The position numbers and the translations under genes are program-made. Of a stretch of 64,000 bases of DNA, positions 5,377 to 64,000 are shown in pieces; positions within the stretch are counted from its first letter, which is position 1; every line of letters starts with the position of its first letter. Under the pieces are notes generated by a model. It was not told where the DNA came from. It did not search any database and worked only from the letters and a program-made list of their open reading frames with translations. Origin of the DNA: Amphiscolops sp. MND2022 (lineage: Eukaryota); NCBI GenBank assembly GCA_964187785.1, contig OZ076421.1, forward strand, positions 50,096,001-50,160,000, in the 5' to 3' direction.

Positions 5377-8300
5377 TGCAGAAGCTCGATCTATGAAGAG
5401 CACGTGCCATCAATGTGAATGACACTTTCAAACACTTTGGATCCAAAAGGTGAGTAGTATAGAAATTTGTTAGGTATACAACGGGGTGAGGCCCTCTCGG
5501 GGCCAACGGGGATGATCCGAATCCTTCACGGAATCCTTGAATTTGCGGTTTCACTGAGACGTAGCGCAAAGCGAAGCTTTTCACAGTGTCTGCGCAGACC
5601 GTGTCGCGACACAGAAAGGAACCGAAGTTCCTATTGGCACTCTCTGCTCGTTACCGATGTCCACGAAAGCCAGCTGAAGTGATTTCTAGTTGAAATTGAA
5701 AATAGAATCCGACAAAGAGAACAGTCAAAATAAAGGTGTGAAAGTAGACTTCAACAACGACTGACAGTCATGAAATTAGAAAACTCAAATTTCAACAGAA
5801 TCAAAAGGCCAAAAGACTCATTTTCATGCCTATAAACGAAAAGGACGAAAAATGAGAAAACCTCTTAATATCCGACTTCTCTCAGACGTGAATTGTAGAG
5901 GAGAATCCAAAAATAAGTAATCAGGGTACCACAACAAAAAATCATCTAGTCAAGATCAAAATTTACCTTTGCTTATATTGCAATTTCCACTTGAAAAAAA
6001 TCTCATCTCCTTACTCAACCAACTCACTTAGAATCTGAAGATGTCTCCCCCCAATTACGAACAGTATGAGCGAGGCCCCTCTATGCTAAGAAGAAGAGCA
6101 ATCAGCTCAATCCCAGAGTGCGATATCACGCCATAATAGTGGCTGAAGATGGAGCTGGTTTTTATTGCTTCTCAGACGCCAAAAAAGCTGGGCTGTTGAA
6201 AGAGCCGCGCCGTCAAAAACAACCCTTCGATGGCGCCAACTACAGCAGTCAGGTGGCGAAATGGCGGTATCTCAATCATCCGTCGCCCTGTTCCAAACGG
6301 TGGCGGCATCAACGAGACCCCATTGCTAAAAAAGTCTCGAACCTCATAGGCGACGATTGAAGTGCAAGTGTGAGAACTTGTACTGTTCTGAAATCTCCTG
6401 TAAAGCAACCACTCCTGGTGTCCTCCTAGTTGTTTTTTTCTTCATCGTGTGCTGGTGATTCACCGGTTTTGAGCTCGATCTGGGCCAATTTAGCAACTGT
6501 AGGAGCCACCGACATGGTTCATGGTAACGAGACCAAAGCTTCAAAAGCAAAGATTTCTCTAAGATTTTTTCCAGGATAGAAAATTGAGAAAGCTAAGCGG
6601 GGATTTTTTCTGAGATAAAATATGAATGAATTGACAAATAACTAAGATAAAAGACTTAGAGTGGCTTTTACGTGAAAATGAGAATGAATGATTGAAGATT
6701 CTGCCCAAAAAGTGAAAATTGTTATTTACAAAAAACTTGTCAACAAAAAGGCACATCAGTGAAGAATGAATTATGTACATATGTATAAATAACCAGACAT
6801 TTCAGTCAATGATTGGCATTATTTGTACCATTAATTACAATAAAATATTGCATGGTTATGTTATGCTAATAAACATATTCACAAAATGTACAATTCACCA
6901 ACAGAGTTTGAGTGAAGATTAAATGGATGTTAATATGGGGCGGCATAATATTAAAGGTGTATGAAAAAGTTGTATATAAGTAATATTCTGATTGACAACA
7001 TAAAATTGGTGGTCATGCATAAAAAACTGAGCCACCAAAACATCCTAATGCAGAAGCTCGATCTATGAAGAGCACGTGCCATCAATGTGAATGACACTTT
7101 CAAACACTTTGGATCCAAAAGGTGAGTAGTATAGAAATTTGTTAGGTATACAACGGGGTGAGGCCCTCTCGGGGCCAACGGGGATGATCCGAATCCTTCA
7201 CGGAATCCTTGAATTTGCGGTTTCACTGAGACGTAGCGCAAAGCGAAGCTTTTCACAGTGTCTGCGCAGACCGTGTCGCGACACAGAAAGGAACCGAAGT
7301 TCCTATTGGCACTCTCTGCTCGTTACCGATGTCCACGAAAGCCAGCTGAAGTGATTTCTAGTTGAAATTGAAAATAGAATCCGACAAAGAGAACAGTCAA
7401 AATAAAGGTGTGAAAGTAGACTTCAACAACGACTGACAGTCATGAAATTAGAAAACTCAAATTTCAACAGAATCAAAAGGCCAAAAGACTCATTTTCATG
7501 CCTATAAACGAAAAGGACGAAAAATGAGAAAACCTCTTAAGATCCGACTTCTCTCAGACGTGAATTGTAGAGGAGAATCCAAAAATAAGTAATCAGGGTA
7601 CCACAACAAAAAATCATCTAGTCAAGATCAAAATTTACCTTTGCTTCTATTGCAATTTCCACTTGAAAAAAATCTCATCTCCTTACTCAACCAACTCACT
7701 TAGAATCTGAAGATGTCTCCCCCCAATTACGAACAGTATGAGCGAGGCCCCTCTATGCTAAGAAGAAGAGCAATCAGCTCAATCCCAGAGTGCGATATCA
7801 CGCCATAATAGTGGCTGAAGATGGAGCTGGTTTTTATTGCTTCTCAGACGCCAAAAAAGCTGGGCTGTTGAAAGAGCCGCGCCGTCAAAAACAACCCTTC
7901 GATGGCGCCAACTACAGCAGTCAGGTGGCGAAATGGTGGTATCTCAATCATCCGTCGCCCTGTTCCAAACGGTGGCGGCATCAACGAGACCCCATTGCTA
8001 AAAAAGTCTCGAACCTCATTGGCGACGATTGAAGTGCAAGTGTGAGAACTTGTACTGTTCTGAAATCTCCTGTAAAGCAACCACTCCTGGTGTCCTCCTA
8101 GTTGTTTTTTTCTTCATCGTGTGCTGGTGATTCACCGGTTTTGAGCTCGATCTGGGCCAATTTAGCAACTGTAGGAGCCACCGACATGGTTCATGGTAAC
8201 GAGACCAAAGCTTCAAAAGCAAAGATTTCTCTAAGATTTTTTCCAGGATAGAAAATTGAGAAAGCTAAGCGGGGATTTTTTCTGAGATAAAATATGAATG

Positions 8301-8720
8301 AATTGACAAATAACTAAGATAAAAGACTTAGAGTGGCTTTTACGTGAAAATGAGAATGAATGATTGAAGATTCTGCCCAAAAAGTGAAAATTGTTATTTA
8401 CAAAAAACTTGTCAACAAAAAGGCACATCAGTGAAGAATGAATTATGTACATATGTATAAATAACCAGACATTTCAGTCAATGATTGGCATTATTTGTAC
8501 CATTAATTACAATAAAATATTGCATGGTTGTGTTATGCTAATAAACATATTCACAAAATGTACAATTCACCAACAGAGTTTGAGTGAAGATTAAATGGAC
8601 GTTAATATGGGGCGGCATAATATTAAAGGTGTATGAAAAAGTTGTATATAAGTAATATTCTGATTGACAACATAAAATTGGTGGTCATGCATAAAAAACT
8701 GAGCCACCAAAACATCCTAA
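5377..8720. repeat. 1672-bp direct tandem duplication at the left edge of the H3-like array
   Basis: 5377-7048 is repeated at 7049-8720; ORF pairs are offset by exactly 1672 (5467/7139, 6118/7790, 6559/8231). Confidence 0.95.
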
Positions 8721-11125
8721 TGAGTTTCATATTTGATTATGGCGGCCGTTTCCGTAGCTATCTTAACAGTTTCCAGTCTACTTTCGCTGAACCAAATTCG
8801 GTTTAGTTTCTGAACCCGGTAATGGTAAAAACAGAAAGTACTAGTCTTTCAAATGGAAGTTTTCTAATCGAAAGCTAAGTACTGTTCTGAAATCGCCTGT
8901 AACGCAACCACTCCTGGTGTCCTCCTAGTTGTTTTTTCCTTCATCGTGTGCTGGTGATTCACCGATTTTGAGCTCGATCTGGGCCAATTTAGCCACTGTA
9001 GGAGCCACCGACATGGTTCATGGTAAAGATACCATAGCTTCAGAAGCAAAGATTTTTCTAAGATTTTTTCCAGGATAGAAAATTGAGAAAGCTAAGCGGG
9101 GAATTTTTCTCAGATAGAAAAGGAATGAATTGACAAATAACTAATATAAATGACTTAGTGTGGCTTTTACGTGAAAATGAGAATGAATGAATGAAGATTC
9201 TGCCCAAAAAGTAAAAATTGTTATTTACAAAAAACTTGTCAACAAAAAGGCACATCAGTGAAGAATGAATTATGTACATATGTATAAATAACCAGTAAAA
9301 ATTTGACATTTCAGTCAAGGATTGGCATTATTTGTACCATTAATTACAATAAAATATTGCATGGTTATGTCATGCTAATAAACATATTCACAAAATGTAC
9401 AATTCACCGACAGAATTTGAGTGAAGATTAAATGGATGTTAATATGGGGCGGCATAATATTAAAGGTGTATGAAAAAGTTGTATATAAGTAACATTCTGA
9501 TTGACAACACAAAATTGGTGGTCATGCATAAAAAACTGAGCCACCAAAACATCCTAATGAGTTTCATCTTTGATTATGGCGGCCGTTTCCGTGGCTATCT
9601 TAACAGTTTCCAGTCTAATTTCGCTGAACCAAATTCGGTTTAGTTTCTGAACCCGGTAATGGTAAAAACAGAAAGTACTAGTCTTTCAAATGGAAGTTTT
9701 CTAATCAAAAGCTAAGTACTGTTCTGAAATCGCCTGTAAAGCAACCACTCCTGGTGTCCTCCTAGTTGTTTTTTCCTTCATCGTGTGCTGGTGATTCACC
9801 GGTTTTGAGCTCGATCTGGGCCAATTTAGCCACTGTAGGAGCCACCGACATGGTTCATGGTAAAGATACCATAGCTTCAGAAGCAAAGATTTTTCTAAGA
9901 TTTTTTCCAGGATAGAAAATTGAGAAAGCTAAGCGGGGATTTTTTCTGAGATAGAAAATGAATGAATTGACAAATAACTAAGATAGAGACTTAGTGTGGC
10001 TTTTACGTGAAAATGAGAATGAATGAAGATTCTGCCCAAAAAGTGAAAATTGTTATTTCCAAAATCTTGTCAACAAAAAGGCACATCAGTGGAGAATAAA
10101 TTATGTACATATGTATAAATAACCAGTAAAAATTTGACATTTCAGTCAAGGATTGGCATTATTTGTACCATAAATTACAATAAAATATTGCATGGTTATG
10201 TCATGCTAATAAACATATTCACAAAATGTACAATTCACCGACAGAATTTGAGTGAAGATTAAATGGATGTTAATATGGGGCGGCATAATATTAAAGGTGT
10301 ATGAAAAAGTTGTATATAAGTAATATTCTGATTGACAACACAAAATTGGTGGTCATGCATAAAAAACTGAGCCACCAAAACATCCTAATGAGTTTCATCT
10401 TTGATTATGGCGGCCGTTTCCGTGGCTATCTTAACAGTTTCCAGTCTAATTTCGCTGAACCAAATTCGGTTTAGTTTCTGAACCCGGTAATGGTAAAAAC
10501 AGAAAGTACTAGTCTTTCAAATGGAAGTTTTCTAATCAAAAGCTAAGTACTGTTCTGAAATCGCCTGTAAAGCAGCCACTCCTGGTGTCCTCCTAGTTGG
10601 TTTTTCCTTCATCGTGTGCTGGTGATTCACCGGTTTTGAGCTCGATCTGGGCCAATTTAGCCACTGTAGGAGCCACCGACATGGTTCATGGTAAAGATAC
10701 CATAGCTTCAGAAGCAAAGATTTTTCTAAGATTTTTTCCAGAATAGAAAATTGAGAAAGCTAAGCGGGGATTTTTTCTGAGAAAGAAAATGAATGAATTG
10801 ACAAATAACTAAGATAAAGACTTAGTGTGGCTTTTACGTGAAAAGGAGAATGAATGAAGATTCTGCCCAAAAAGTGAAAATTGTTATTTCCAAAAAACTT
10901 GTCAACAAAAAGGCACATCAGTGGAGAATAAATTATGTACATATGTATAAATAACCAGTAAAAATGTGACATTTCAGTCAATGATTGGCATTATTTGTAC
11001 CATTAATTACAATAACATATTGCATGGTTATGTCATGCTAATACATATTCACAAAATGTACAACTCACCGACAGAATTTGAGTGAAGATTTAAATGGATG
11101 TTAATATGGGGCGGTATAATATTAA
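6380..11125. repeat. ~835-bp tandem array with histone H3-like fragment, left arm
   Basis: The marker ctaatgagtttca recurs at ~8722, 9559 and 10390. The minus strand of each unit encodes KKTTRRTPGVVALQEI and, after a frameshift, [15 protein letters not shown]. Confidence 0.95.
8842..9014 (-). pseudogene. Histone H3-like (variant or CenH3-like) fragment, representative copy
   Basis: Reconstructed MSVAPTVAKLAQIELK...K.KTTRRTPGVVALQ(E/A)I / [15 protein letters not shown] versus canonical H3 [35 protein letters not shown]. It has frameshifts, a stop and a non-canonical N-tail. The end copy at ~27.97 kb reads [16 protein letters not shown] without the stop. Confidence 0.75.
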
Positions 11126-11154
11126 CATTACGACGCATATCCCTACACTTTTTG
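11126..11154 (+). repeat. Left terminal inverted repeat
   Basis: cattacgacgcatatccctacactttttg. Confidence 0.95.
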
Positions 11155-11156
11155 AA

Positions 11157-11575
11157 AACTGCGGAATTGACTGCTAACCGCAGGTAGCACCTACCAGACC
11201 TGGAATCCGCTGTTTAAAATGACGGATTTCAAAGACACACTTTATAACATGTGCAGCGGATTCCGCTTGCAATGTTTTCTGGATTCCGGGGACAAATCTC
11301 TTTACATTGAGTTTTTGGTGGAATTCAGAGGCATATATTATTATATTAGCAACAGTGGATTCCACAGTCGCTGTACCGGAATCCGGGGTCACATATTAAT
11401 ACACAGCATAAAATTAGTGGATTCCAAGGACAAGCTTTCGTAATGTAAAAGAAAAAACAGTGGAATCCACTGCTGCGACAGCGGATTCCGCAACAGCACC
11501 AGTGGATTCCGCTGTTGTGCAAGCGAATTCCGCAGTTTTTGACACCTGCTGTTTTTAACAGTGGATTCCACTGCA
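11157..11575. repeat. Left subterminal cluster of quasi-palindromic 11-mers (gcggattccgc / gtggattccac type)
   Basis: About 13 copies in mixed orientation. Confidence 0.9.
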
Positions 11576-11617
11576 AGATATCGCGAAATATGTACCTCGT
11601 TTAATCAGCACTTCTGA

Positions 11618-11823
11618 AGGCTCCAAACGTTTGAATTCAATGAAATTATCATAGTTTCTTATCATAGAACTAGATTAAAACACATCCAATTAAACACAAA
11701 ATACAGTAGTAGATTACGAGCAATACAGAAGTATGATACATATTTTAGTTTATCTCAGTAATCTTAATCCCAGAGACCATAGTAGAATACATAATGGAGA
11801 CAGTAATCTTAATCCCAGAGACA
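11618..11823 (+). repeat. 206-bp internal direct repeat, left copy
   Basis: aggctccaaa(c)gtttgaattcaatgaaattatc...cccagagaca, near-identical to 22301-22506 in the same orientation. Confidence 0.95.
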
Positions 11824-13295
11824 TTTGACCTTTACCGTATTTCGGTTGTAGACATACCAGCTATATTTACAAACATTAGATGTGGAGTTGCTACATCCAT
11901 TTATGTTATTGATGTAACCTAACTCAGTATACATTGTGATCAAAAGAGATACTATTTTAGAAACTCTATTCTTTTCATAGACTTAGTTAGAAATACAACA
12001 CTTACAACATTTATGTTTTAGGACCATTTGTATTCCTTCTGGTTCATCACCCATCAGCACACATCAAAGACACTTCAATGAATGACACACATAATTTGGA
12101 TTTGGCTGCACTATAGCCTTTTTAAATGTTCTAATTAATTAATTATTTCAAACTTGATAAATTTTAGTTGAATCAATTTTAGTCAATTTGTTCAAACGCA
12201 TTCAAAACTATGCGAACCTGGTGCAGCATATGCCATTTGATCTATAGTGATTTAAAGAATTTCTAAAATATTATTTAATTATAACAATTATAGTATTGAT
12301 TTGTAAGAATGTTATCAATACTTAACTTCATAATTTGTGCTGAGTTTTGGTAACAATTATATTGTGTCAAATGTGTTGTAATTAAGTTTTTGTATGCTTA
12401 TATTATCAATGAAGAAAAGAGCCAATTTCAGTCAATATTCAGTTGTCCGAACTTTGTAAAAAACAATCTTCTTTTACCATTCTTCTCTGTGTTTAAGAGA
12501 ATGCATTGTTTGTATTGATTCTGTAAAAATGTTATCAGTATTAACTTCATAATTTGTGCTAAATTTGTGTAACAAAAAGATTTTTGTAGCTGGCAAATTT
12601 TTTGATTCGTGACAGTTGCCGAGATATTTGATTTTCAGTTTGTCATTTTAAGCAATGAGGTTGCGATATTTTAGAACGCTACATTATATCTTGGTATATA
12701 TAATACGTGTCTAAAATGTGTCGGTAACTATAGCATCGCGCCGACCGTCATAAGCGGACTGGCGCCAATCTCACTCTTCTCTGCGTTTGAGAGAACGATG
12801 CATTGGTCACGTGACTGAAATTGTTCGATTTCAGAGTAAAATAAACAAACCGTTCTGACAGTGTGTGATTAGTTACTGCCAAGACAAGTTGCCCAGCTAT
12901 TGAATAATAACTCTCATTTGAACATTTGAAGATTCATAATCGAAATATATAATCTTTACAAAACTAGTTGAAGAATTCTCGAAGTCTTCTTACCAATCTT
13001 CTTTTGATCTTTACTAATTTAGTCTTCTTTTGATTCTAAATCAAGGTAAGTAACATTTATAATCTTCAACCTAATTGTCAAGATTATTTGAGGGAATCTC
13101 TGTATAGGATATTTAGTGTATTTTTGTATTTTTTTGTTTTCTATCAGAAGAGGATTTCGAGCGAAGTCATCGTTTTCAAGTGAACTTTTGCTCAACAATT
13201 CATAGGCTGCGGTGTCTTTTTCTAAAAGCTTTCCTCTGAAAATTGATCATTTTTCAAATGCAACATGCAAAAAGTTCATTCAGGCTCGACTAGGG

Positions 13296-13400
13296 TATAT
13301 ATATATATATATATTTATATATGTATACATATAAATACATATATAATCTGTAATAATCTGTAATTAGGATATATATAATCAGGATATATAATAATTAGGA
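13296..13400. repeat. (TA)n-rich microsatellite
   Basis: Runs of tatata, read directly. Confidence 0.8.
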
Positions 13401-13647
13401 TATATATTTGTCTCTGTATTAAGGATAAGATTCAAGAGAATCTCCGTATAAGATAGGTATATCTCTGTATTCAGAACAGGGCCGGGCTCATTTAAGGGAA
13501 TCTCTGTATTTGAGATAAATATTTGTCTCTGTATCTCAACTCAAAAAAGAAATTGAAACTTGTAGGTTTTAGCTGAACAAACACTTGACTAGGTTACTAA
13601 ACGATCCAAAATAGAATGTATAAAATGGCAGTTCTACAAGCAAAGAG

Positions 13648-14291
13648 TTATTCGGTAAAAAGTTCTTGGGCTGTCTTATCACCGTAATCGAAACGTAGTT
13701 GCTCGAAGGGTTCTATCTGTCGTCTAGCCTTCATTACTGCGATTCTCACAGGGGGATCTGTATAGTCCAAGAGGATGCTAGTAGACTTCATGTTGGCTTC
13801 TCTGTTATCAGCGTTGTTTTTTCTCTGGGTCGCGTGGTTGGCTAAACGACCCATACCTAAACGACATAACGAAATTGTAGAAATTTTTAATCTTACAACT
13901 CTAAAGATAAAACATTATTATTATTACATAAATTTGTTGGATGATCCACACAAATCTCGGAACTGGCATCTATAAGTCGCTTTGGTGGACCTGCTACTTC
14001 CATGACAAACTCGCTCGTAACGTCGGGTTGCTGCACGTACTCATCGAACTTCTGGCCGGTAATGACTTTCCCGTGGTAGTCTACAATTATTGTGTCTTTC
14101 TCCAGTTTTCCTAGACTGACAATGCCTCGACCGAATTTAGTGAAATGGGCATCGCAAATCCATTCCCACTTTTGGTTGTCAATTCGGTCTTTTAAACTCA
14201 TCTGGTTTTCGTATGACAACCTGTCTCCTTTGCAGATGATTGGATTGAACTGAGGCCTGCTTATACTGGTCCGTGATGATGTGCTCTTCAT
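13648..14291 (-). CDS. SET8/PR-Set7 (KMT5A)-like SET domain; last two exons (14291-13928, 13856-13648) of the minus-strand cargo gene
   Basis: Motifs GRG, DYHG, LIDAS, RLANHA and EQLRFDYG are all present. A 71-bp GT-AG phase-1 intron (13927-13857) joins HPTNLC to MGRLANH. There is no post-SET Cys cluster, as in SET8. Confidence 0.88.
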
Positions 14292-14523
14292 CTATACAAA
14301 ACACAGAGCATCCAAACGCAATGATTTTTTCTAATAACCATCGATCACTTAGCATTGGGCAGCTCCAGACAGGCAAAACACTTCTTTAGTTGCTTACCAT
14401 ATGGCACCAAAACAAATGATTTTTTTGCCCCATTCGATTTTCGATTTGTGCCATTGGGAAATTTTACCGTAATCTAATACACTGCAATCTAAAAAACTCG
14501 AACGCGACGTAACCCAACCTAAC

Positions 14524-14757
14524 CTGTTTTAAAGCTATAGTCATCGTTTTCTTGATGTCGCATTTGTCCCAGCCCATCCTCGCATAAAAGGTGTTCAGGC
14601 GCTGCTCCATATCACTGCAGTTTGGCAGTAACCAACCATTGTTCTTGATCCAATGTTGCGCTCTAATTGTTTGCCGATGGTACCGTAATTGGTCAAGTCT
14701 GTGTTTCACTGCCTTGGAAACCTCTTTGTGGGAATACTTTTCTGTCTGACTTTTCAC
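14524..14757 (-). CDS. Exon of the same gene (linker with RAQHWIKNNGW motif)
   Basis: Acceptor tttttag at 14758, donor cag|gttagg at 14523; 234 nt, phase 0 at both ends, in frame with the SET exons. Confidence 0.65.
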
Positions 14758-14851
14758 CTAAAAAAGAATTTCCATTCCTTTGTTGAAAGCGAAAGCTTAG
14801 AAAGTCAATATTTTATTACCAAACGAAAAAGAACAAAACCTGATTGATTAC

Positions 14852-15573
14852 TTGCTTCTGTTTGCCAATGGTGAAACCTGGATCGCTTCGAAACGGCAGA
14901 AAACTCGCAACATGTCTTTCTAGGGTGGTCTCATGGGGGTTATCGATGTGCTGCTGAAGCTAAAATACGCAAACTTAGGTAAACCCTGGAAACATTTGAA
15001 GCAATTTAGGTGTTTCTAGATTGAAGTTTAAGTTTTTACCGTGTCTTTGAATTGGTCGCATAGTTGGCGCACTTTGAAATGGGTTGAGCCATTGGAATTG
15101 ACGAAAAAGCGGTAAGTTCTCACTGTTCTTTCGTCATCTGCGAAAACCCTGGTGAAAACATCAAGACCTTCTTTTGGCAGGAAGTGCGGTCTTGCCTCCA
15201 GGTAGTATGTTTTCAAACCGTCCACTACCCATCGAGGAACAGTGTGCGACGATCTTATCGGAGAAAATTCAGCAGGCTCAACATAGATTGTGGTTCCTGC
15301 TGCAACTGCTGTTTCATCGTCTGTGTCCTCTTGTAAGGAAACGATGGCCTGTGTAACAGCATGCACTGTCAGCTCTATGATACCTTTGTCCATCATTGGT
15401 GGTGATGCATGCTTTGAGAGGAAACACGCCAAAGCACGAAAGAGCATTGTTCTTTGCTTTTGTGTCAGAGCTTCCGTTGTCTTGTACTGCTCTACAATGT
15501 CCCTGATGGCTATCTCAAGTTCTTCTTCAGTCGTCTCGCCACAAGTAACCCTGATAGAAGTCTTCGATATTTT
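14852..15573 (-). CDS. Exons (15573-15040 and 14959-14852) encoding a degenerate tyrosine-recombinase-like region
   Basis: ALACFLS...GIIELTVHAVTQA, LKTYYLEARP...FFVNSNG and ERHVASFL recall the YR domains fused to SET in animal mobile elements. The catalytic R, K, HxxR and Y residues are not evident. Both exons are phase 0 and open. Confidence 0.5.
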
Positions 15574-15847
15574 CTAAATATATTGAATACAAATTTCAAA
15601 AACAACTTCAAAAATTAGAATGAAAGTCAAATAATACTCAACAAGTTCAATCACAAATTCATATGCAAATTGGTTTTCAAATTCAAACACAAAATGAATT
15701 TTAAAATCTGGGAAATATGAAGTTTTTCTTGAGAGTTTTTTTCTTGAAAGTAAAGCTGAAAGAAAATGGAAATCCGTCACCGCTCAGCCAAGGCGGCAGC
15801 TGGAAATTTTCTTGAGGTATGGTACCGAAAACTGAAATCACAATGTA

Positions 15848-15965
15848 TTAGCATTTGTCTGCGGATTCCGCTGCACATGTGTTAACATTTGCTCCTAAAT
15901 TCCGCAACGCTCTTTTGGAAGTCAATGATATGAAACATAAGACAGCGGATTCCGCTGTTATGATG
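15848..15965 (-). repeat. Inverted, diverged copy of the 215-bp unit at 17.1-17.6 kb, inside an intron of the SET gene
   Basis: Its reverse complement matches cataacagcggaa.ccgctg...gcggaatttagg...atgttaa.acatgt.cagcggaatccgcag. Confidence 0.75.
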
Positions 15966-16055
15966 AACAAACTTGTTTTCGTGCTCTATGTGGTTCTAGA
16001 AGGTGAAAATCTCCCGCTTCAGTTTGAAATTTTCAATTGAAATTCAAAAACTGAC

Positions 16056-16496
16056 CTCCGGAATATCAATTGTTGATCTTTTAGGGCTAGTTGCTCTTTT
16101 CCGGCTTTCTTCAAGTTGCTCAGTCGACGAAGCTTCAAGCGGAGGAAGAAAAAGGTCCGGCGAGTGTTCAGGTGGTGGAAGAATTTCACCAAACATGTTC
16201 GGAGGAAGTTCGTGCGAAGTTCCATCCATGTTGAGCCATTGCGATTGATTCCAATCAAAATATGACGGTTGTGAATATTGTCGAACTGCAGCCGGACTCT
16301 TTCCGGTAGGGGTAGTCAAATATTCATGCGATCGTGAGAGAGGGGTTAATGATGGAACTGGAGGAGGAGGTAGTGTAAGTGTAAACGTCTCGGGTTGCAC
16401 TGGCGTTGAGGTAACTAGTTGAGGCGATTGAAGTTCTGTCAAATTTCCAAGATCTTCTAATGGTTGTGACTGAATTTGATGCGTTTGCAGAGACAT
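16056..16496 (-). CDS. Pro/Ser/Thr-rich first coding exon of the SET gene
   Basis: Open frame MSLQTHQ...IDIPE ending at the phase-0 donor gag|gtcagt. It joins in frame to the exon starting at 15573. The full six-exon model is about 629 aa with no stops. Confidence 0.6.
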
Positions 16497-16649
16497 TGTA
16501 GGTTTTTTCGAGAAATAGAACGATGTACAATTCAAATTGACTGATTCCTAGTAGATCAAAATTATATTATGAATAGTATTATGAATAGTATTATAATACT
16601 ACTGAAACTGCTAATTACTTAACTGCTTATTGCTACCATAGTAATTTAA

Positions 16650-16799
16650 CACTTCCACTTTGACAAATTAAAAAAAGCCTCATCAGACGCTGCCAATGAA
16701 AATAACTGTAATTATATAATTATAATGATTATAATTTTATAATTATTTCTATTATAATTTTTGGCAGCGCCTGATGCGGTTCTTAATCATTTGGAAGTG
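16650..16799. mobile_element. 150-bp MITE with TTAA flanks (piggyBac-like)
   Basis: TTAA|CACTTCCA...TGGAAGTG|TTAA, with inner inverted arms catcagacgctgccaa / ttggcagcgcctgatg around an AT-rich core. Confidence 0.7.
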
Positions 16800-17084
16800 T
16801 TAAAACCACACCTCATATATCATTTGACTTGAGTCATTAGCACTTTTTCTCATTGTTCGTTCTTTGGCCCGAAAGAATGCCCGACAAGTTTTCATCAGGA
16901 CTTGAAAGATGAATGCGTGAAACACATGTATCTTGGATTGGCCGAATGACACTCATATGAATAAAACCCTATCTATAACAATGAAATACAATCTATGTTA
17001 CACAATCTAGAACAACATTGAGCACCAAACGATTTTTTCCTCATAACAACAAAATGTTTTATACTCCATATTATTGCCTCCCAA

Positions 17085-19429: not shown

Positions 19430-19620
19430 GAACTTCTCTGGATTTAAGAATGAGATCTCTTCTCAGGATCTTAGAATGCAATCTCTTCTCCGGACTCTAG
19501 ATCTAATCGGTTTTGAGTCTCTGGATTCACGAATAAGATATCTTCTTTAGACTTAAATCTCTGGTTTTAAGAATTAGGTCTTTTCTCTAGATATAAATCT
19601 CTGGATTGACGAATAAGGTT
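19430..19620. repeat. Degenerate intronic minisatellite (tctctggatt.a.gaat)
   Basis: About 5 imperfect copies in a JmjC gene intron. Confidence 0.6.
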
Positions 19621-22506: not shown

Positions 22507-22509
22507 ACA

Positions 22510-22990: not shown

Positions 22991-23019
22991 CTGCTCAAAC
23001 GGCTCAACTTTGATCTGCA

Positions 23020-52500: not shown

Positions 52501-55500
52501 TTTTTCAGCTCGGAAATCAGTACTTGTTCACCGATATTGAAACGATGTTCATCGACGCCGAGAACGAAGAAACTGCTGGTCTAGCGCGCTACATGAACAA
52601 TGACCATCGAAAACCAAATGCCAAAGCTGTCCATTACGTCGACTCCAGTGAGATAATTTACAGATAAAACTACCAATTCTCATCAATTCTTTTCCTTCAG
52701 GAGGAATAGCACAAGTCCAATTCGTCGCCATCCGCGAAAGATGAGGAAGTCAGTTACAACTATAATGGACTTGACCTCACTTGGAGGACAATTGGGTACT
52801 TTCAAGCAACCAACTTCGACTCCATTTCCAAATTTATTTATATTTCTGGTCGTTGAAGCATGTATTGTTTCGAACAGGAACAAGAAAGTCAAAATCCTCG
52901 TGAATTCAGAAGAGTAAATTCAAACGAACAAGAGAAGTATAAAACTTGGAAAAAACAGCTATTGGGTTCCGTTGAAATCTCGATGCGGCTTTGCAAATAA
53001 TTGCGTTTTTTCTAGAGCTAGTAACGAAGACTGTGAACACCTAACACCTCCGAATATGGTACCAACAGTCCTGGAAGCAAAGTAAAAACCTTTAAAATAT
53101 TCCAATGAACAAAAAGTTAGAAGGTGCAGTTCCTCATGCGTTCTGCGTTTCAGCAAACGAAAACGAATTACGAGGAAAGAATAAAACTATCAAAACTTTA
53201 TTGGAAACCAAGTCAAGAAACATTGAATACGGAATTGGTAAAAACTGTATTTTTAGATTAGATGCAGTCCAATGCATTTCAAAGCAGGAATACAACCGCA
53301 GACTGAGAGTGAGTATCTCATTCAAAAGTAATGTGTCAAAAACTTAACAGTTTTGTTTTTGGTAAGTTATATACTTTGTACTAAAATAATTTTTCAGCTC
53401 GGAAATCAGTACTTGTTCAACGATATTAAAACGATGTTCATCGACGTCGAGAACGAAGAAACTGCTGGTCTAGAGCGATACATGAACAAAGACCATCGAG
53501 AACCAAATGCCAAAGCTGTCAATTACGTCGACTCCAGTGAGATATTTTAGATAAAACTACCAAATCTCATCAATTTTTTTCCTTCAGGAGGAATACCACA
53601 AGTCCAATTCGTCGCCATCCGCGAAAGATGAGGAAGTCAGTTACAACTATAATGGACTTGACCTCACTTGGCGGACAATTGGGTACTTTCAAGCAACCAA
53701 CTTCGACTCCATTTCCAAATTCATTTATATTTCTGGTCGTTGAAGCATGTGTTGTTTCGAACAGGAACAAGAAAGTCAAAATCCTCGTGAATTCAGAAGA
53801 GTCAGATTCAAACGACCAAGAGAAGAATAAAACTTGAGAATACAGCTATTGGGTTCCGTTGAAATCTCGATGCAGCTTTGCAAATAATTGCGTTTTTTCT
53901 AGAACTAGTGACGAAGACTGTGATCACCTACCACCTCCGAATGCGGTACCAACAGATCTGGAAGCAAAGTAAAAACCTTTAAAATATTCCAAGTGAACAA
54001 AACGTTAGAAGGTGCAGTTCCTCATGCGTTCTGCGTTTCAGCAAACGAAAGCAAATTACAACGAAGAAAAAAGAAAACTATCAAAACTTTATTGGAAACC
54101 AAGTCAAGAAAAATTGAATACCGAAATGGTAAAAACTGTAATTTTAGATTAGATGCAGTCCAACGCATTTATAAGCAGGAATACAACCGCAGACTGAGAG
54201 TGAGTATCTCATTCAGAAGTATTGTGTCAAAAACTTAACAGTTTTGTTTTTGGTAAGTTATATACTTTGTACTAAAATAATTTTTCAGCTCGGAAATCAG
54301 TACTTGTTCAACGGTATTAAAACGATGTTCATCGACGCCGAGAACGAAGAATCTGCTGGTCTAGCGCGATACATGAACAAAGACCATCGAAAACCAAATG
54401 CCAAAGCTGTCAATTACGTCGACTCCAGTGAGATATTTTACAGATAAAACTACCAATTCTCATCAATTTTTTTTCCTTCAGGAGGAATAGCACAAGTCCA
54501 ATTCGTCGCCATCCGCGAAAGATGAGGAAGTCAGTTACAACTATAATGGACTTGACCTCACTTGGAGGACAATTGGGTACTTTCAAGCAACCAACTTCGA
54601 CTCCATTTCCAAATTCATTTATATTTCTGGTCGTTGAAGCATGTATTGTTTCGAACAGGAACAAGAAAGTCAAAATCCTCGTGAATTCAGAAGAGTAAAT
54701 TCAAACGAACAAGAGAAGTATAAAACTTGGGAAAAACAGCTATTGGGTTCCGTTGAAATCTCGATGCGGCTTTGCAAATAATGCGTTTTTTCTAGAACTA
54801 GTGACGAAGACTGTGATCACCTACCACCTCCGAATGCGGTACCAACAGTCCTGGAAGCAAAGTAAAAACCTTTAAAATATTCCAAGTGAACAAAAAGTTA
54901 GAAGGTGCAGTTCCTCATGCGTTCTGCGTTTCAGCAAACAAAAGCGAATTACAACGAAAAAAAAAGAAAACTATCAAAACTTTATTGGAAACCAAGTCAA
55001 GAAAAATTGAATACCGAAATGGTAAAAACTGTATTTTTAGATTAGATGCAGCCCAACGCATTTATAAGCAGGAATACAACCGCAGACTGAGAGTGAGTAT
55101 CTCATTCGAAAGTAATGTGTTAAAAACTTAACAGTTTTGTTTTTGGTAAGTTATATACTTTGTACTAAAACAATTTTTCAGCTCGGAAATCAGTACTTGT
55201 TCACCGATATTGAAACGATGTTCATCGACGCCGAGAACGAAGAAACTGTTGGTCTAGCGCGATACATGAACAATGACCATCGAAAACCAAATGCCAAAGC
55301 TGTCAATTACGTCGACTCCAGTGAGATATTTTACAGATAAAACTACCAAATCTCATCAATTTTTTTCCTTCAGGAAGAATACCACAAGTCCAATTCGTCG
55401 CCATCCGCGAAAGATGATGAAGTCAGTTACAACTATAAAGGACTTGACCTCACTTGGAGGACAATTTGGTACTTTCAAGCAACCAACTTCGACTCCATTT

Positions 55501-58500
55501 CCAAATTTATTTATATTTCTGGTCGTTGAAGCATGTATTGTTTCGAACAGGAACAAGAAAGTCCAAATCCTCGTGGATTCAGAAGAGTCAGATTCAAACG
55601 AACAAGAGAAGTATAAAACTTGAGAATACAGCTATTGGGTTCCGTTGAAATCTCGATGTGGCTTTGCAAATAATTGCGTTTTTTCTAGAACTAGTGACGA
55701 AGACTGTGAACACATACCACCTCCGAATGCGGTACCAACAGTCCTGGAAGCAAAGTAAAAACCTTTAAAATATTCCAAGTGAACAAAAAGTTAGAAGGTG
55801 CAGTTCCTCATGCGTTCTGCGTTTCAGCAAACGAAAGCGAATTACAACGAAGAAAAAAGAAAACTATCAAAACTTTATTGGAAACCAAGTCAAGAAAAAT
55901 TGAATACCGAAATGGTAAAAACTGTATTTTTAGATTAGATGCAGTCCAACGCATTTCAAAGCAGGAAGACAACCGCAGACTGAGAGTGAGTATCTCATTC
56001 AAAAGTAATCTGTCAAAAACTTAACAGTTTTGTTTTTGGTAAGTTATATACTTTGTACTAAAACAATTTTTCAGCTCGGAAATCAGTACTTGTTCACCGA
56101 TATTGAAACGATGTTCATCGACGCCGAGAACGAAGAAACTACTGGTCTAGCGCGCTATATGAACAATGACCATCGAAAACCAAATGCCAAAGCTGTCCAT
56201 TACGTCGACTCCAGTGAGATATTTCACAGATAAAACTACCAATTCTCATCAATTTTTTTCCTTCAGGAGGAATAGCACAAGTCCAATTCGTCGCCATCCG
56301 CGAAAGATAAGAAAGTCAGTTACGACTATAATGGACTTGACCTCACTTGGAGGACAATTTGGTACTTTCAAGCAACCAACTTCGACTCCATTTCCAAAGT
56401 TATTTATATTTCTGGTCGTTGAAGAACAGGAACAAGAAAGTCAAAATCCTCGTGGATTCAGAAGAGTCAGATTCAAACGAACGAGAGAAGTATAAAACTT
56501 GAGAATACAGCTATTGGGTTCCGTTGAAATCTCGATGTGGCTTTGCAAATAATTGCGTTTTTTCTAGAACTAGTGGCGAAGACTGTGAACACCTACCACC
56601 TCCGAATGTGGTACCAACAGTCCTGGAAGCAAAGTAAAAACCTTTAAAAGATTCCAATGAACAAAAAGTTAGAAGGTGCAGTTCCTCATGCGTTCTGCGT
56701 TTCAGCAAACGAAAGCGAATTACAACGAGGAAAGAAGAAAACTATCAAAACTTTATTGGAAACCAAGTCAAGAAACATTGAATACCGAAATGGTAAAAAC
56801 TGTATTGTTAGATTAGATGCAGTGCAACGCATTTCCAAGCAGGAATACAACCGCAGACTGAGAGTGAGTATCTCATTCAAAAGTGATGTGTCAAAAACTT
56901 AACAGTTTTGTTTTTGGTAAGTTATATACTTTGTACTAAAACAATTTTTCAGCTCGGAAATCAGTACTTGTTCACCGATATTGAAACGATGTTCATCGAC
57001 GCCGAGAACGAAGAAACTACTGGTCTAGCGCGCTATATGAACAATGACCATCGAAAACCAAATGCCAAAGCTGTCCATTATGTCGACTCCAGTGAGATAT
57101 TTTACAGATAAAACTACCAATTCTCATCAATTTTTTTCCTTCAGGAGGAATAGCACAAGTCCAATTCGTCGCCATCCGCAAAAGATAAGAAAGTCAGTTA
57201 AGACTATAATGGACTTGACCTCACTTGGAGGACAATTTGGTACTTTCAAGCAACCAACTTCGACTCCATTTCCAAAGTTATTTATATTTCTGGTCGTTGA
57301 AGAACAGGAACAAGAAAGTCAAAATCCTCGTGGATTCAGAAGAGTCAGATTCAAACGAACGAGAGAAGTATAAAACTTGAGAATACAGCTATTGGGTTCC
57401 GTTGAAATCTCGATGTGGCTTTGCAAATAATTGCGTTTTTTCTAGAACTAGTGGCGAAGACTGTGAACACCTACCACCTCCGAATGTGGTACCAACAGTC
57501 CTGGAAGCAAAGTAAAAACCTTTAAAAGATTCCAATGAACAAAAAGTTAGAAGGTGCAGTTCCTCATGCGTTCTGCGTTTCAGCAAACGAAAGCGAATTA
57601 CAACGAGGAAAGAAGAAAACTATCAAAACTTTATTGGAAACCAAGTCAAGAAACATTGAATACCGAAATGGTAAAAACTGTATTGTTAGATTAGATGCAG
57701 TGCAACGCATTTCCAAGCAGGAATACAACCGCAGACTGAGAGTGAGTATCTCATTCAAAAGTGATGTGTCAAAAACTTAACAGTTTTGTTTTTGGTAAGT
57801 TATATACTTTGTACTAAAACAATTTTTCAGCTCGGAAATCAGTACTTGTTCACCGATATTGAAACGATGTTCATCGACGCCGAGAACGAAGAAACTACTG
57901 GTCTAGCGCGCTATATGAACAATGACCATCGAAAACCAAATGCCAAAGCTGTCCATTATGTCGACTCCAGTGAGATATTTTACAGATAAAACTACCAATT
58001 CTCATCAATTTTTTTCCTTCAGGAGGAATAGCACAAGTCCAATTCGTCGCCATCCGCGAAAGATAAGAAAGTCAGTTAAGACTATAATGGACTTGACCTC
58101 ACTTGGAGGACAATTTGGTACTTTCAAGCAACCAACTTCGACTCCATTTCCAAAGTTATTTATATTTCTGGTCGTTGAAGAACAGGAACAAGAAAGTCAA
58201 AATCCTCGTGGATTCAGAAGAGTCAGATTCAAACGAACGAGAGAAGTATAAAACTTGAGAATACAGCTATTGAGTTCCGTTGAAATCTCGATGTGGCTTT
58301 GCAAATAATTGCGTTTTTTCTAGAACTAGTGGCGAAGACTGTGAACACCTACCACCTCCGAATGTGGTACCAACAGTCCTGGAAGCAAAGTAAAAACCTT
58401 TAAAAGATTCCAATGAACAAAAAGTTAGAAGGTGCAGTTCCTCATGCGTTCTGCGTTTCAGCAAACGAAAGCGAATTACAACGAGGAAAGAAGAAAACTA

Positions 58501-61500
58501 TCAAAACTTTATTGGAAACCAAGTCAAGAAACATTGAATACCGAAATGGTAAAAACTGTATTGTTAGATTAGATGCAGTGCAACGCATTTCCAAGCAGGA
58601 ATACAACCGCAGACTGAGAGTGAGTATCTCATTCAAAAGTGATGTGTCAAAAACTTAACAGTTTTGTTTTTGGTAAGTTATATACTTTGTACTAAAACAA
58701 TTTTTCAGCTCGGAAATCAGTACTTGTTCACCGATATTGAAACGATGTTCATCGACGCCGAGAACGAAGAAACTGCTGGTCTAGCGCGCTACATGAACAA
58801 TGACCATCGAAAATCAAATGCCAAAGCTGTCCATTACGTCGACTCCAGTGAGATATTTTACAGATAAAACTACCAAATCTCATCAATTTTATTCCTTCAA
58901 GAGGAATACCACAAGTCCAATTCGTCGCCATCCGCGAAAGATAAGGAAGTCAGTTACGACTATAATGGACTTGACCTCACTTGGAGGACAATTGGGTACT
59001 TTCAAGCAACCAACTTCGACTCCATTTCCAAATTTATTTATATTTCTGGTCGTTGAAGCATGTATTGTTTCGAACAGGAACAAGAAAGTCAAAATCCTCG
59101 TGGCTTCAGAAGAGTAAATTCAAACGAACAAGAGAAGTATAAAACTTGGAGAATACAGCTATTGGGTTCCGTTGAAATCTCGATGCGGCTTTGCAATTAA
59201 TTGCGTTTTTTTCTAGATCTAGTGACGAAGACTGAACACCTACCACCTCCGAATGTGGTACCAACAGTCCTGGAAGCAAAGTAAAAACCTTTAAAATACT
59301 CCAATGAACAAAAAGTTAGAAGGTGCAGTTCCTCATGCGTTCTGCGTTTCTGCAAACGAAAGCGAATTACAACGAGGAAAGAAGAAAACTATCAAAACTT
59401 TATTGGAAACCAAGTCAAGAAAAATTGAATACCGAAATGTTAAAAACTGTATTTTTAGATTAGATGCAGTCCAACGCATTTCAAAGCAGGAAGACAACCG
59501 CAGACTGAGAGTGAGTATCTCATTCAAAAGTAATCTGTCAGAAAACTCAACAGTTTTGTTTTTGGTAAGTTATATACTTTGTACTAAAACAATTTTTCAG
59601 CTCGGAAATCAGTACTTGTTCACCGATATTGAAACGATGTTCATCGACGCCGAGAACGAAGAAACTGCTGGACTAGCGCGGTACATGAACAATGACCATC
59701 GAAAACCAAATGCCAAAGCTGTCAATTACGTCGACTCCAGTGAGATATTTTACAGATAAAACTACCAAATCTCATCATTTTTTTCCTTCAGGAGGAATAC
59801 CACAAGTCCAATTCGTCGCCATCCGCGGAAGATGAGGAAGTCAGTTACGACTATCAAGGACTTGACCTCACTTGGAGGACAATTGGGTACTTTCAAGCAA
59901 CCAACTTCGACTCCATTTCCAAAGTTATTTATATTTCTGGTCGTTGAAGCATGTATTGTTTCGAACAGGAACAAGAAAGTCAAAATCCTCGTGGATTCAG
60001 AAGAGTCAGATTCAAACGAACGAGAGAAGTATAAAACTTGAGAATACAGCTATTGGGTTCCGTTGAAATCTCGATGTGGCTTCGCAAATAATTGCGTTTT
60101 TTCTAAAACTAGTGGCGAAGACTGTGAACACCTACCACCTCCGAATGTGGTACCAACAGTCCTGGAAGCAAAGTAAAAACCTTTAAAAGATTCCAATGAA
60201 CAAAAAGTTATAAGGTGCAGTTCCTCATGCGTTCTGCGTTTCAGCAAACGAAAGCGAATTACAACGAGGAAAGAAGAAAACTATCAAAACTTTATTGGAA
60301 ACCAAGTCAAGAAACATTGAATACCGAAATGGTAAAAACTGTATTGTTAGATTAGATGCAGTCCAACGCATTTCCAAGCAGGAATACAACCGCAGACTGA
60401 GAGTGAGTATCTCATTCAAAAGTGATGTGTCAAAAACTTAACAGTTTTGCTTTTGGTAAGTTATATACGTTGTACTAAAACAATTTTTCAGCTCGGAAAT
60501 CAGTACTTGTTCACCGATATTGAAACGATGTTCATCGACGCCGAGAACGAAGAAACTGCTGGTCTAGCGCGCTACATGAACAATGACCATCGAAAATCAA
60601 ATGCCAAAGCTGTCCATTACGTCGACTCCAGTGAGATATTTTACAGATAAAACAACCAAATCTCATCAATTTTATTCATTCAGGAGGAATACCACAAGTC
60701 CAATTCGTCGCCATCCGCGAAAGATAAGGAAGTCAGTTACGACTATAATGGACTTGACCTCACTTGGAGGACAATTGGGTACTTTCAAGCAACCAACTTC
60801 GACTCCATTTCCAAATTTATTTATATTTCTGGTCGTTGAAGCATGTATTGTTTCGAACAGGAACAAGAAAGTCAAAATCCTCGTGGCTTCAGAAGAGTAA
60901 ATTCAAACGAACAAGAGAAGTATAAAACTTGGAAAATACAGCTATTGGGTTCCGTTGAAATCTCGATGCGGCTTTGCAAATAATTGGGTTTTTTTCTAGA
61001 ACTAGTGACGAAGACTGTGAACACCTACCACCTCCGAATGTGGTACCAACAGTCCTGGAAGCAAAGTAAAAACCTTTAAAATATTCCAAGTGAACAAAAA
61101 GTTAGAAGGTGCAGTTCCTCATGCGTTCTGCGTTTCAGCAAACGAAAGCGAATTACAACGAGGAAAGAAGAAAACTATCAAAACTTTATTGGAAACGAAG
61201 TCAAGAAACATTGAATACCGAAATGGTAAAAACTGTATTGTTAGATTAGATGCAGTCCAACGCATTTCCAAGCAGGAATACAACCGCAGACTGAGAGTGA
61301 GTATCTAATTCAAAAGTGATGTGTCAAAAACTTAACAGTTTTGTTTTTGGTAAGTTATATAATTTGTACTAAAACAATTTTTCAGCTCGGAAATCAGTAC
61401 TTGTTCACCGATATTGAAACGATGTTCATCGACGCCGAGAACGAAGAAACTGCTGGTCTAGCGCGCTACATGAACAATGACCATCGAAAACCAAATGCCA

Positions 61501-64000
61501 AAGCTGTCCATTACGTCGACTCCAGTGAGATATTTTACAGATAAAACTACCAAATCTCATCAATTTTATTCCTTCAGGAGGAATACCACAAGTCCAATTC
61601 GTCGCCATCCGCGAAAAATAAGGAAGTCAGTTACAACTATAATGGACTTGACCTCACTTGGAGGACAATTGGGTACTTTCAAGCAACCAACTTCGACTCC
61701 ATTTCCAATTTTATTTATATTTCTGGTCGTTGAAGCATGTATTGTTTCGAACAAGAACAAGAAAGTCAAAATCCTCGTGGCTTCAGAAGAGTAAATTCAA
61801 ACGAAGAGAAGTATAAAACTTGGAGAATACAGCTATTGGGTTCAGTTGAAATCTCGATGCGGCTTTGCAAATAATTGCGTTTTTTTCTAGAACTAGTGAC
61901 GAAGACTGTGAACACCTACCACCTCCGAATGTGGTACCAACAGTCCTGGAAGCAAAGTAAAAACCTTTAATATTCCAAGTGAACAAAAAATTAGAAGGTG
62001 CAGTTCCTCATGCGTTCTGCGTTCCAGCAAACGAAAGCGAATTACGAGGAAAAAAGAAAACTATCAAAACTTTATTGGAAACCAAGTCAAGAAAAATTGA
62101 ATACCGAAATGGTAAAAACTGTATTTTTAGATTAGACGCAGTCCAAGGCATTTCAAAGCAGAAATACAACCGCAGACTGAGAGTGAGTATCTCATTCAAA
62201 AGTGATGTGTCAAAAACTTAACAGTTTTGTTTTTGGTAAGTTATATAATTTGTACTAAAACAATTTTTCAGCTCGGAAATCAGTACTTGTTCACCGATAT
62301 TGAAACGATGTTCATCGACGCCGAGAACGAAGAAAATGCTGGTCTAGCGCGCTACATGAACAATGACCATCGAAAACCAAATGCCAAAGCTGTCCATTAC
62401 GTCGACTCCAGTGAGATATTTTACAGATAAAACTACCAAATCTCATCAATTTTATTCCTTCAGGAGGAATACCACAAGTCCAATTCGTCGCCATCCGCGA
62501 AAAATAAGGAAGTCAGTTACGACTATAATGGACTTGACCTCACTTGGAGGACAATTGGGTACTTTCAAGCAACCAACTTCGACGCCATTTCCAAATTTAT
62601 TTATATTTCTGGTCGTTGAAGCATGTATTGTTTCGAACAAGAACAAGAAAGTCAAAATCCTCGTGGCTTCAGAAGAGTAAATTCAAACGAAGAGAAGTAT
62701 AAAACTTGGAGAATACAGCTATTGGGTTCAGTTGAAATCTCGATGCGGCTTTGCAAATAATTGCGTTTTTTTCTAGAACTAGTGACGAAGACTGTGAACA
62801 CCTACCACCTCCGAATGTGGTACCAACAGTCCTGGAAGCAAAGTAAAAACCTTTAATATTCCAAGTGAACAAAAAATTAGAAGGTGCAGTTCCTCATGCG
62901 TTCTGCGTTCCAGCAAACGAAAGCGAATTACGAGGAAAAAAGAAAACTATCAAAACTTTATTGGAAACCAAGTCAAGAAAAATTGAATACCGAAATGGTA
63001 AAAACTGTATTTTTAGATTAGATGCAGTCCAAGGCATTTCAAAGCAGAAATACAACCGCAGACTGAGAGTGAGTATCTCATTCAAAAGTGATGTGTCAAA
63101 AACTTAGCAGTTTTGTTTTTGGTAAGTTATATACTTTGTACTAAAACAATTTTTCAGCTCGGAAATCAGTACTTGTTCACCGATATTAAAACGATGTTCA
63201 TCGACGCCGAGAACGAAGAAACTGCTGGTCTAGCGTGATCTAGGTGATCAGGTCTAGTATCTCATTCAAAAGTGATGTGTCAAAAACTTAGCAGTTTTGT
63301 TTTTGGTAAGTTATATACTTTGTACTAAAACAATTTTTCAGCTCGGAAATCAGTACTTGTTCACCGATATTAAAACGATGTTCATCGACGCCGAGAACGA
63401 AGAAACTGCTGGTCTAGCGCGATACATGAACAATGACCATCGAAAACCAAATGCCAAAGCTGTCAATTACGTCGACTCCAGTGAGATATTTTACAGAAAA
63501 AACTACCAAATCTCATCAATTTTTTTTCCTTCAGGAGGAATACTACAAGTCCAATTCGTCGCCATCCGCGAAAGATGAGGAAGTCAGTTACGACTATAAT
63601 GGACTTGACCTCACTTGGAGGACAATTGGGTACTTTCAATCAACCAACTTCGACTCCATTTCCAAATTTATTTATATTTCTGGTCGTTGAAGCATGTATT
63701 GTTTCGAACAGGAACAAGAAAGTCAAAATCCTCGTGGCTTCAGAAGAGTAAATTCAAACGAACAAGAGAAGTATAAAACTTGGAGAATACAGCTATTGGG
63801 TTCCGTTGAAATCTCGATGCGGCTTTGCAAATAATTGCGTTTTTTTCTAGAACTAGTGACGAAGACTGTGAACACCTACCACCTCCGAATGTGGTACCAA
63901 CAGTCCTGGAAGCAAAGTAAAAACCTTTAAAATATTCCAAGTGAACAAAAAGTTAGAAGGTGCAGTTCCTCATGCGTTCTGCGTTTCAGCAAACGAAAGC
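46153..64000. repeat. ~890-bp tandem array derived from SET-gene exons and introns (about 20 copies, runs off the window)
   Basis: The marker gtttttggtaagtta recurs from ~46237 to ~63297 with periods of 878-894 bp. Confidence 0.97.

Follow-up and report, generated by a model that had tools for sequence, protein, structure and literature searches.

How does one short stretch of a genome come to combine several kilobase-scale tandem arrays, some of whose units contain relics of histone and histone-modifying genes, with a transposon that itself carries chromatin-modifier genes? This question is raised by a 64,000-nucleotide stretch of DNA from Amphiscolops sp. MND2022 (GCA_964187785.1, contig OZ076421.1, positions 50,096,001-50,160,000 of the forward strand), which is termed here the window and whose own positions are used throughout. 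An earlier, sequence-only reading of the window proposed that its arrays are amplified pieces of large mobile elements laden with histone and histone-modifier genes. The analysis presented here points to a different origin: the window probably holds three locus-specific macrosatellite arrays that grew by tandem duplication and unequal exchange, that were built in layers, and that were later struck by a terminal inverted repeat (TIR) transposon.

The window contains no N and consists largely of three kilobase-scale tandem arrays (A, B and C) and one TIR element, which by self-blastn together occupy 56,065 of its 64,000 bases (87.6%, in good agreement with the roughly 85% estimated earlier). Their parts are as follows, with the strand where one was assigned:

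5377-8722: left edge of array A, two 1672-bp higher-order units that are 99.6% identical by self-blastn
8052-11125, minus strand: left part of array A, made up of 832-bp units that each contain an H3 fragment with a frameshift (e.g., 9643-9777)
11126-23048: TIR element of 11.9 kb, with 29-bp TIRs at 11126-11154 and 23020-23048 (28 of 29 positions complementary) and a 2-bp target duplication, AA
23046-27260, minus strand: right part of array A, ~5 units of 832 bp, with the best-preserved H3 relic at 26525-26698
27750-27988, minus strand: displaced A-unit fragment of 239 bp, with an H3 relic at 27902-28000 that continues past the fragment's end to 28000
28534-44627: array B, with 8 units of the short kind (~1336 bp), 3 of the long kind (~1930 bp) and some partial ones, 93-98% identical
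44628-46152, plus strand: unique 5' part of an insert in a long B unit, with exon 1 of a SET8-like gene at 46026-46190, running into the first C unit
46153-64000, and on to 64996 beyond the window, plus strand: array C, 21 units of ~890 bp, 92-100% identical

There are thus three arrays, as had been noticed, but they do not lie side by side as was supposed; rather, they are nested, with the TIR element inside array A and with array C on an insert inside array B. All three have the head-to-tail organization of macrosatellites (~11 units of 832 or 1672 bp in A, ~11 of 1336 or 1930 bp in B, and 21 of 890 bp in C). The window lies in the middle of a contig, as is evident from the fact that record positions equal window positions plus 503,738, which places it at 503.7-567.7 kb of the 855-kb contig ctg185871_204x_l (854,932 bp; ENA assembly ERZ25074608). 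When the public contig is read beyond the window, to the equivalent of position 69,759, B-type sequence resumes to the right of the C-bearing insert and continues to 65,916, so that the island of arrays spans ~60.5 kb (from 5377 to ~65,916). The next 3.8 kb consist of ordinary sequence with transposon relics, as do the first 5.4 kb of the window. These dimensions--arrays of 6-19 kb each, within an island of ~60 kb that has ordinary sequence on both sides--are not those of a classical satellite, centromeric or heterochromatic block. Because the island ends at ~65.9 kb, well inside an 855-kb contig, it is not a large satellite compartment, and the proposal that the site belongs to such a compartment is weakened. 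Nor is the island one giant TIR element, which is ruled out by the absence of inverted repeats at its borders.

That the arrays or their nesting are an artifact of mis-assembled repeats is very improbable. The depth label of the contig (204x, versus ~90-100x for other contigs of ERZ25074608) could mean that copies have been collapsed, but a twofold depth is expected for a stretch merged from both haplotypes; the label fits such a merger and does not point to hemizygosity. Moreover, the 20.4 kb that were compared in full (locus L005) are 100% identical between the window and the public contig, the two loci covering arrays B and C come from that record as well, the units show structured differences of 0-8% among themselves, and the junctions (11125/11126, 23048/23049, 44627/44628 and ~65070/65081) are clean and unique.

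The H3-like relic of array A that had been noticed by eye is genuine. The relic at 26525-26698 (minus strand) matches structures in the PDB with an expectation value (E) of 1.1e-5, all 60 of the best matches being to H3, at residues 51-88; the Pfam Histone family matches the corresponding open reading frame (ORF) at 0.015. The 832-bp units are 92-97% identical by self-blastn, and each 1672-bp unit combines 671 bp of A-unit sequence with ~1 kb of other sequence. A single stop-free frame in the two units that have decayed least reads YRRFQNSTELLIRKLPFER..., and immediately upstream of it, in a different frame, RRTPG(V/K)VAL corresponds to H3 residues 37-53 (38 of 38 PDB matches at E up to 10 are to H3); an alignment made here to a generic H3 codon string places an 8-nt deletion between the two pieces. 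In most units, TAG replaces the Glu codon of STELL. No H3 fold is recognizable past residue ~75-88: ORFs downstream lack a Histone-family match and tblastn with H3 proteins finds the N-terminal helix region only, on which grounds the idea that the A unit retains the remaining histone fold was rejected. Hence the match is specific to H3, while neither a complete fold nor an open frame is present; as judged from its frames, the relic is a dead fragment of ~35-50 codons (residues ~37-75, possibly to 88) and not a gene. What had been taken for hints of a second H3-like relic, at 27902-28000, is merely the displaced A fragment, and the Cys4-His-Cys3 pattern of a suspected PHD finger occurs in no frame.

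No closer progenitor of the H3 fragment was found in a search of 1.84 billion representatives, which returned 19 matches, all of them, at ~58% identity, to ordinary H3. The idea that some H3 variant nearer to the fragment was its progenitor was rejected on this basis, the ~58% matches ranking high only because the gene models fuse tandem H3 genes. A word search with the relic protein P0031 (which represents the tail frame, not the better-conserved helix frame) matched only itself. The top matches of the larger search (P0032-P0049) are gene models in which tandem histone genes have been fused, so that H3 occurs two to three times in each--a trap for histone-fragment queries in general.

Array B shows no tRNA (ARAGORN), Rfam or protein-family signal, and the idea that it consists of tRNA or other Pol III genes was rejected, given that ARAGORN and Rfam searches were empty across the window. 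It harbors an insert whose flanks, in the coordinates of the long B unit, stop at 1607 on the left and restart at 1628 on the right; the intact site is present in 3 other long B units. Before amplification the insert measured ~2.5 kb, corresponding to 44628-47044 plus 64997-65070. A block of short repeated motifs (45293-45560) lies in its unique part, upstream of the SET8-like exon 1.

The insert contains a small, intron-containing gene with canonical GTGAG splice donors. Pfam SET matches are colinear on its exons 1 and 2, and a comparison of exon 1 with the PDB gives SETD8/KMT5A as 14 of 14 best matches (E 1.2e-3), with about one third of residues identical to human SETD8. Each C unit comprises the middle of exon 1, exon 2, a frameshifted exon 3 and ~450 bp of downstream sequence. 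Thus the SET domain is closest to SET8, but the reading frame is not intact: some units carry stops, and the units lack the start of the gene. An apparently intact, colinear homologue occurs in a locus of a second assembly (L007 in ERZ26859043, at 10343-10990); its exon 1 is 67% identical, and there is no nucleotide similarity outside the exons. Because the exons are conserved between the two loci while the introns and flanks are not, the gene would have been kept as a coding sequence for a long time. Relative to this homologue, a frameshifting deletion in exon 3 is common to all 17 of the units whose exon 3 was captured, from which it appears that the gene was already dead when the 890-bp piece was first duplicated. 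The L007 homologue itself sits amid unrelated tandem arrays with units of 714 bp, ~178 bp and 9 bp (L007:1-4400 and 16500-20549), and ORFs of 300 and 150 amino acids without a family match lie 3-4 kb downstream of it.

Variation within array C is informative as to how the array has evolved. Exon 2 shows 5 synonymous and 15 non-synonymous variants and 1 stop, and to judge from these its variation looks neutral. The units also follow a two-unit higher-order pattern (units 3, 4, 6 and 8 versus units 5, 7 and 9), and units 12-14 are 99-100% identical, a pattern that would be the signature of continuing unequal exchange. Unit 20 is made irregular by a 184-bp internal duplication at 63072-63423.

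These observations suggest the following succession of events. First, an 832-bp unit containing a dead H3 fragment would have been amplified into array A. Second, a non-coding unit of 1.3-1.9 kb would have been amplified into array B. Third, a ~2.5-kb segment with a divergent, intron-containing SET8-like gene would have entered one long B unit, and after the frameshifting deletion an internal 890-bp piece of it would have been duplicated in tandem, eventually reaching the 21 copies of array C. Fourth, and recently, an internally deleted, non-autonomous copy of a ~17.8-kb TIR transposon would have inserted into array A, presumably mobilized in trans by full-length copies.

The last of these steps is documented by empty sites. 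Nine other A units retain the uninterrupted site ...ATATTAAAGGTG, and the filled site reads ATATTAA, then the element, then AAAGGTG; in other words, the element went cleanly into an array A that already existed, duplicating 2 bp. Together with the TIRs, the empty sites and the dispersed copies that have the same ends, this marks the element structurally as a cut-and-paste TIR transposon. Its recognizable features within the window are:

13651-14291, minus strand: SET-domain exons, with an RLANH motif at 13825-13848 and an FDYG motif at 13675-13698 (Pfam SET, E 0.02 and 0.1, colinear)
14467-16547, minus strand: three ORFs upstream in the element's SET gene (167, 181 and 97 amino acids), with no family match
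17055-17660: internal tandem repeat of 218 bp, 2.8 copies, with an inverted partial copy at 15801-16000
18284-18751, plus strand: C2H2 zinc finger ORF (Pfam zf-C2H2, 1.6e-4)
20003-20618, plus strand: JmjC gene, 5' part only, with coding segments at 20204-20293 (HxD motif), 20374-20460 and 20564-20614

The family to which this copy belongs is dispersed over dozens of contigs. The 181-amino-acid ORF (15031-15573, minus strand) has relatives in the same assembly that form a 90% identity cluster of 38 variants, two further exons of the element form clusters of 45 and 47 variants, and one SET-exon protein is identical on 9 contigs. Six loci (L001-L004, L006 and L011) match window positions 11126-20618 at 84-99% and then diverge; they probably represent four insertion sites, since L003 and L004 have the same flank and L001 and L006 look allelic. 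An identical terminus with differing flanks is found in L002, L006 and L011 and at the far end of L009, which contains a full-length copy (6430 to ~24270, that is, ~17.8 kb). Comparison with the latter indicates that window positions 20622-23045 are the family's other end, beside the second TIR, and that 6.1 kb of internal sequence are absent from the window copy. This internal part includes ORFs of 215 and 148 amino acids, ORFs of 487 and 497-561 amino acids (one of which has a BRCT domain; Pfam 5.8e-7), a second block of the 218-bp repeat and the 3' half of the JmjC gene. Another full-length copy lies ~200 kb away on the window's own contig, in non-array sequence. By this comparison, the window copy is a non-autonomous internal-deletion derivative of the ~17.8-kb family. 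Its insertion appears to be recent, inasmuch as it is 98-99% identical to one subfamily; and because a non-autonomous deletion copy has paralogous empty sites, the family seems still to move, in a TIR-dependent manner and with a 2-bp duplication.

Several minor observations concern individual copies. L003 and L004, like L001 and L006, have the same insertion and flanks on different ~90-100x contigs and are probably the two haplotypes of one site each; in L003 and L004 the terminal five TIR bases are missing, and a Gypsy-type retroelement (reverse transcriptase, RNase H and integrase) adjoins the TIR copy (L003:17131-20216 and L004:15188-20216). A third, internal TIR-like copy occurs at L009:9096-9235, ~2.7 kb from the element end and 80% identical to window positions 11125-11264.

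The JmjC demethylase recognized in the window is KDM2/KDM7/PHF8-like (PDB E 0.0065; best matches KDM2A, KDM7 and PHF8). In the window it ends at the deletion breakpoint, 20618, before the second iron-binding His. Within the family, however, both the fold and the His-x-Asp...His triad are present, HQD being found in all copies and the second-His segment in full-length copies (L004). The SET domain of the element is a different matter. The sequence-only reading described two SET8-like domains, of which that of array C is indeed SET8-like; that of the element gives weak Pfam matches, at E values of 0.02 and 0.1, on a colinear pair of exons, along with its RLANH and FDYG motifs, and neither exon, each searched singly, has a match by sequence in the PDB. 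Likewise, the ORFs upstream of it have no match at E 0.1 to Phage_integrase, the family expected of a Crypton or tyrosine-recombinase element, when each exon is searched singly. When subfamilies are compared, those cargo exons that the window copy also contains have a pooled ratio of non-synonymous to synonymous change (pN/pS) of 0.38 (Fisher p 9e-12); the JmjC exon has a ratio of 0.19 (p 6e-7), the first SET exon 0.10-0.25 and the C2H2 ORF 0.33, and none of the homologous cargo ORFs contains a stop. By these ratios, the SET, JmjC, C2H2 and other cargo exons are subject to purifying selection. Overall, this is a recently active, multi-copy family of ~17.8 kb carrying SET, JmjC, C2H2 and BRCT-containing genes. 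In this respect the proposed large mobile family with chromatin-modifier genes has been found, but without the histone that was also ascribed to it, as the full-length copy lacks an H3-like gene.

As to its classification, the element resembles the CACTA/Mirage/Chapaev superfamily in its CA...TG termini, short target duplication, subterminal repeats and large size, but differs from it in that its terminus is CATTACG rather than CACTA and in that no transposase domain is found by Pfam or PDB sequence searches. With this terminus, a duplication of 2 rather than 3 bp and no Transposase_21/24 match, it does not fit the CACTA/EnSpm superfamily. A single-sequence fold prediction aimed at the transposase was uninformative (predicted local distance difference test score of 39).

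Are the arrays, then, derived from such cargo-laden elements? As regards the TIR family itself, the answer is no. Neither blastn nor tblastx matches the A, B and C units or the two spacers to any of five partial copies or to one full-length copy, and the hypothesis that the arrays are pieces of this family was rejected for that reason. Close kinship of the two SET domains was rejected as well: they are barely alignable (25% identity over 28 residues), and the SET domain of array C is far closer to cellular SET8 than to that of the element. Moreover, among called ORFs, those of the arrays form singleton clusters found on this contig only, versus 38-47 variants for the element clusters (array B contributes no ORFs). 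The claim that the satellites are amplified element pieces is thus unsupported: there is no sequence link, there is no H3 in the full-length element, and the array ORFs are local to the contig. Nor did protein searches reveal a progenitor holding H3, SET and JmjC genes together; they yielded one SET8-like homologue, in the other assembly and in no recognizable transposon context.

A more elusive variant of the hypothesis is that arrays A and C were amplified from parts of a large element of some other family, one that carried H3-like and SET8-like genes. This is unlikely, though it is the alternative with the most to recommend it. The SET8-like gene is divergent (recall that its exon 1 is about one third identical to human SETD8) and arrived as a discrete 2.5-kb insert, and its exons alone are conserved with the L007 homologue, which suggests a sequence long kept as coding. 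Set against this are the lack of any link to the full-length 17.8-kb family; the results of an exon-1 word search, which found no second copy in this assembly; those of the H3-relic searches, which returned ordinary H3 at ~58% or the relic itself; the absence of TIRs both on the insert and on the island as a whole; and the neighborhood of the L007 homologue, where no transposon domain is recognizable apart from an unrelated reverse transcriptase ~4 kb away. The more specific possibility that array A's H3 fragment and array C's SET8-like gene stem from one unrecognized mobile or virus-like element with a histone and histone-methyltransferase module is slightly less likely again. If true, it would mean that cargo-laden elements seed macrosatellites and that the island may be a small-RNA source directed against them. 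A search of viral contigs turned up no relatives of the SET8-like protein or of the element ORF.

Layered growth of locus-specific macrosatellites nevertheless remains the favored explanation, although several points weigh against it. Host genomes normally hold one conserved SET8 gene, and a divergent extra SET8-like copy hints at a transposon origin; the SET8-like gene of the 2.5-kb insert could well be former transposon cargo. The insert that entered array B has neither TIRs nor a clear target duplication, only a run of seven A residues at its 3' end, so that it might be a mobile-element piece in its own right. Dispersed or single progenitors of the arrays may have been missed, because occurrence elsewhere was judged from called ORFs only. 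Finally, a transposase for the TIR family was not found, in that the 487- and 497-561-amino-acid ORFs have no Pfam match save BRCT and the 487-amino-acid ORF has no PDB match. On balance, ordinary macrosatellite dynamics together with a recent transposon insertion account best for the island. The transposon does have a chromatin theme of its own, and in the arrays the theme is a co-occurrence for which no common source has been demonstrated; a link between cargo and satellites, which would be the surprising part if real, is not borne out by the tests that were run.

The human macrosatellites D4Z4, which contains the DUX4 retrogene, and RS447, which contains USP17, likewise have gene-derived units. 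Like the arrays described here, they consist of head-to-tail, kilobase-scale units at one locus, with a gene or gene fragment in each unit, homogenized by local unequal exchange. The arrays of the window differ in that they contain dead fragments only (an H3 piece of ~35-50 codons and a frameshifted SET8-like piece without a start) and in that three unrelated arrays are nested within 60 kb. Macrosatellites with gene-derived units have been surveyed (PMC2588610), and D4Z4/DUX4 has been treated in its own right (PMC12376486, PMC13558733). The window adds a clean, datable example of kilobase-scale satellites made from gene fragments, in which one can still read the insert, the frameshift that came before, the junction of the first duplication and the higher-order copies that followed.

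Satellites seeded by mobile elements provide a second comparison. Examples include the foldback transposon Tetris of Drosophila virilis (PMC4079207), satellite-like repeats borne by Helentrons in the Pacific oyster (PMC7492417) and retrotransposon-derived arrays in plants (PMC7004042); such satellites have also been reviewed (PMC9659126). This is the process that was proposed for the window, and the TIR element does hold short tandem repeats of its own (with units of 218, 166 and 140 bp). However, the three large arrays share no sequence with this element, and its internal repeats are unexpanded here.

The transposon, in turn, recalls the capture of chromatin genes by mobile DNA, of which SETMAR is an instance. 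In 823 known gene models a chromatin domain, usually a PHD or Chromo reader and in some cases SET, is joined to a transposon domain (Grau-Bove et al., 10.1101/2021.11.30.470311), and TET/JBP dioxygenase genes reside in fungal DNA transposons (PMC12730594). The shared property is a mobile element that keeps chromatin-modifier genes as selected cargo; the difference here is that SET (writer-type), JmjC (eraser-type), C2H2 and BRCT domains occur in separate, intron-containing genes within one ~17.8-kb TIR element. Full-text literature searches yielded no account of SET and JmjC genes together in a TIR element. A transposon that, as its sequence suggests, keeps both methyltransferase-type and demethylase-type genes would be well suited to the study of how mobile DNA manipulates host chromatin.

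There remains the question of whether the island does anything. It might be a functional chromatin or small-RNA locus--a cluster of the PIWI-interacting RNA type, a site of heterochromatin nucleation or a centromere-associated region--whose transcripts act on matching genes or elements. This is compatible with, rather than exclusive of, a macrosatellite origin. In its favor is the clustering of the nested repeats with several mobile-element relics besides the TIR element:

4227-4442, minus strand: relic of a hAT transposase C-terminal dimerization domain (Pfam 3e-5), in the unique left flank
27251-27598, plus strand: relic of a GIY-YIG nuclease (Pfam GIY-YIG 1.4e-5), of the kind found in Penelope-like retroelements

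The arrays are, in addition, strand-uniform, and their recent homogenization suggests active turnover. But the island amounts to only ~60 kb between stretches of ordinary sequence, and the variation within array C looks neutral, so that a functional role is improbable and the arrays would be non-functional. As for the relics themselves, that of the GIY-YIG nuclease separates the end of array A from the displaced A fragment.

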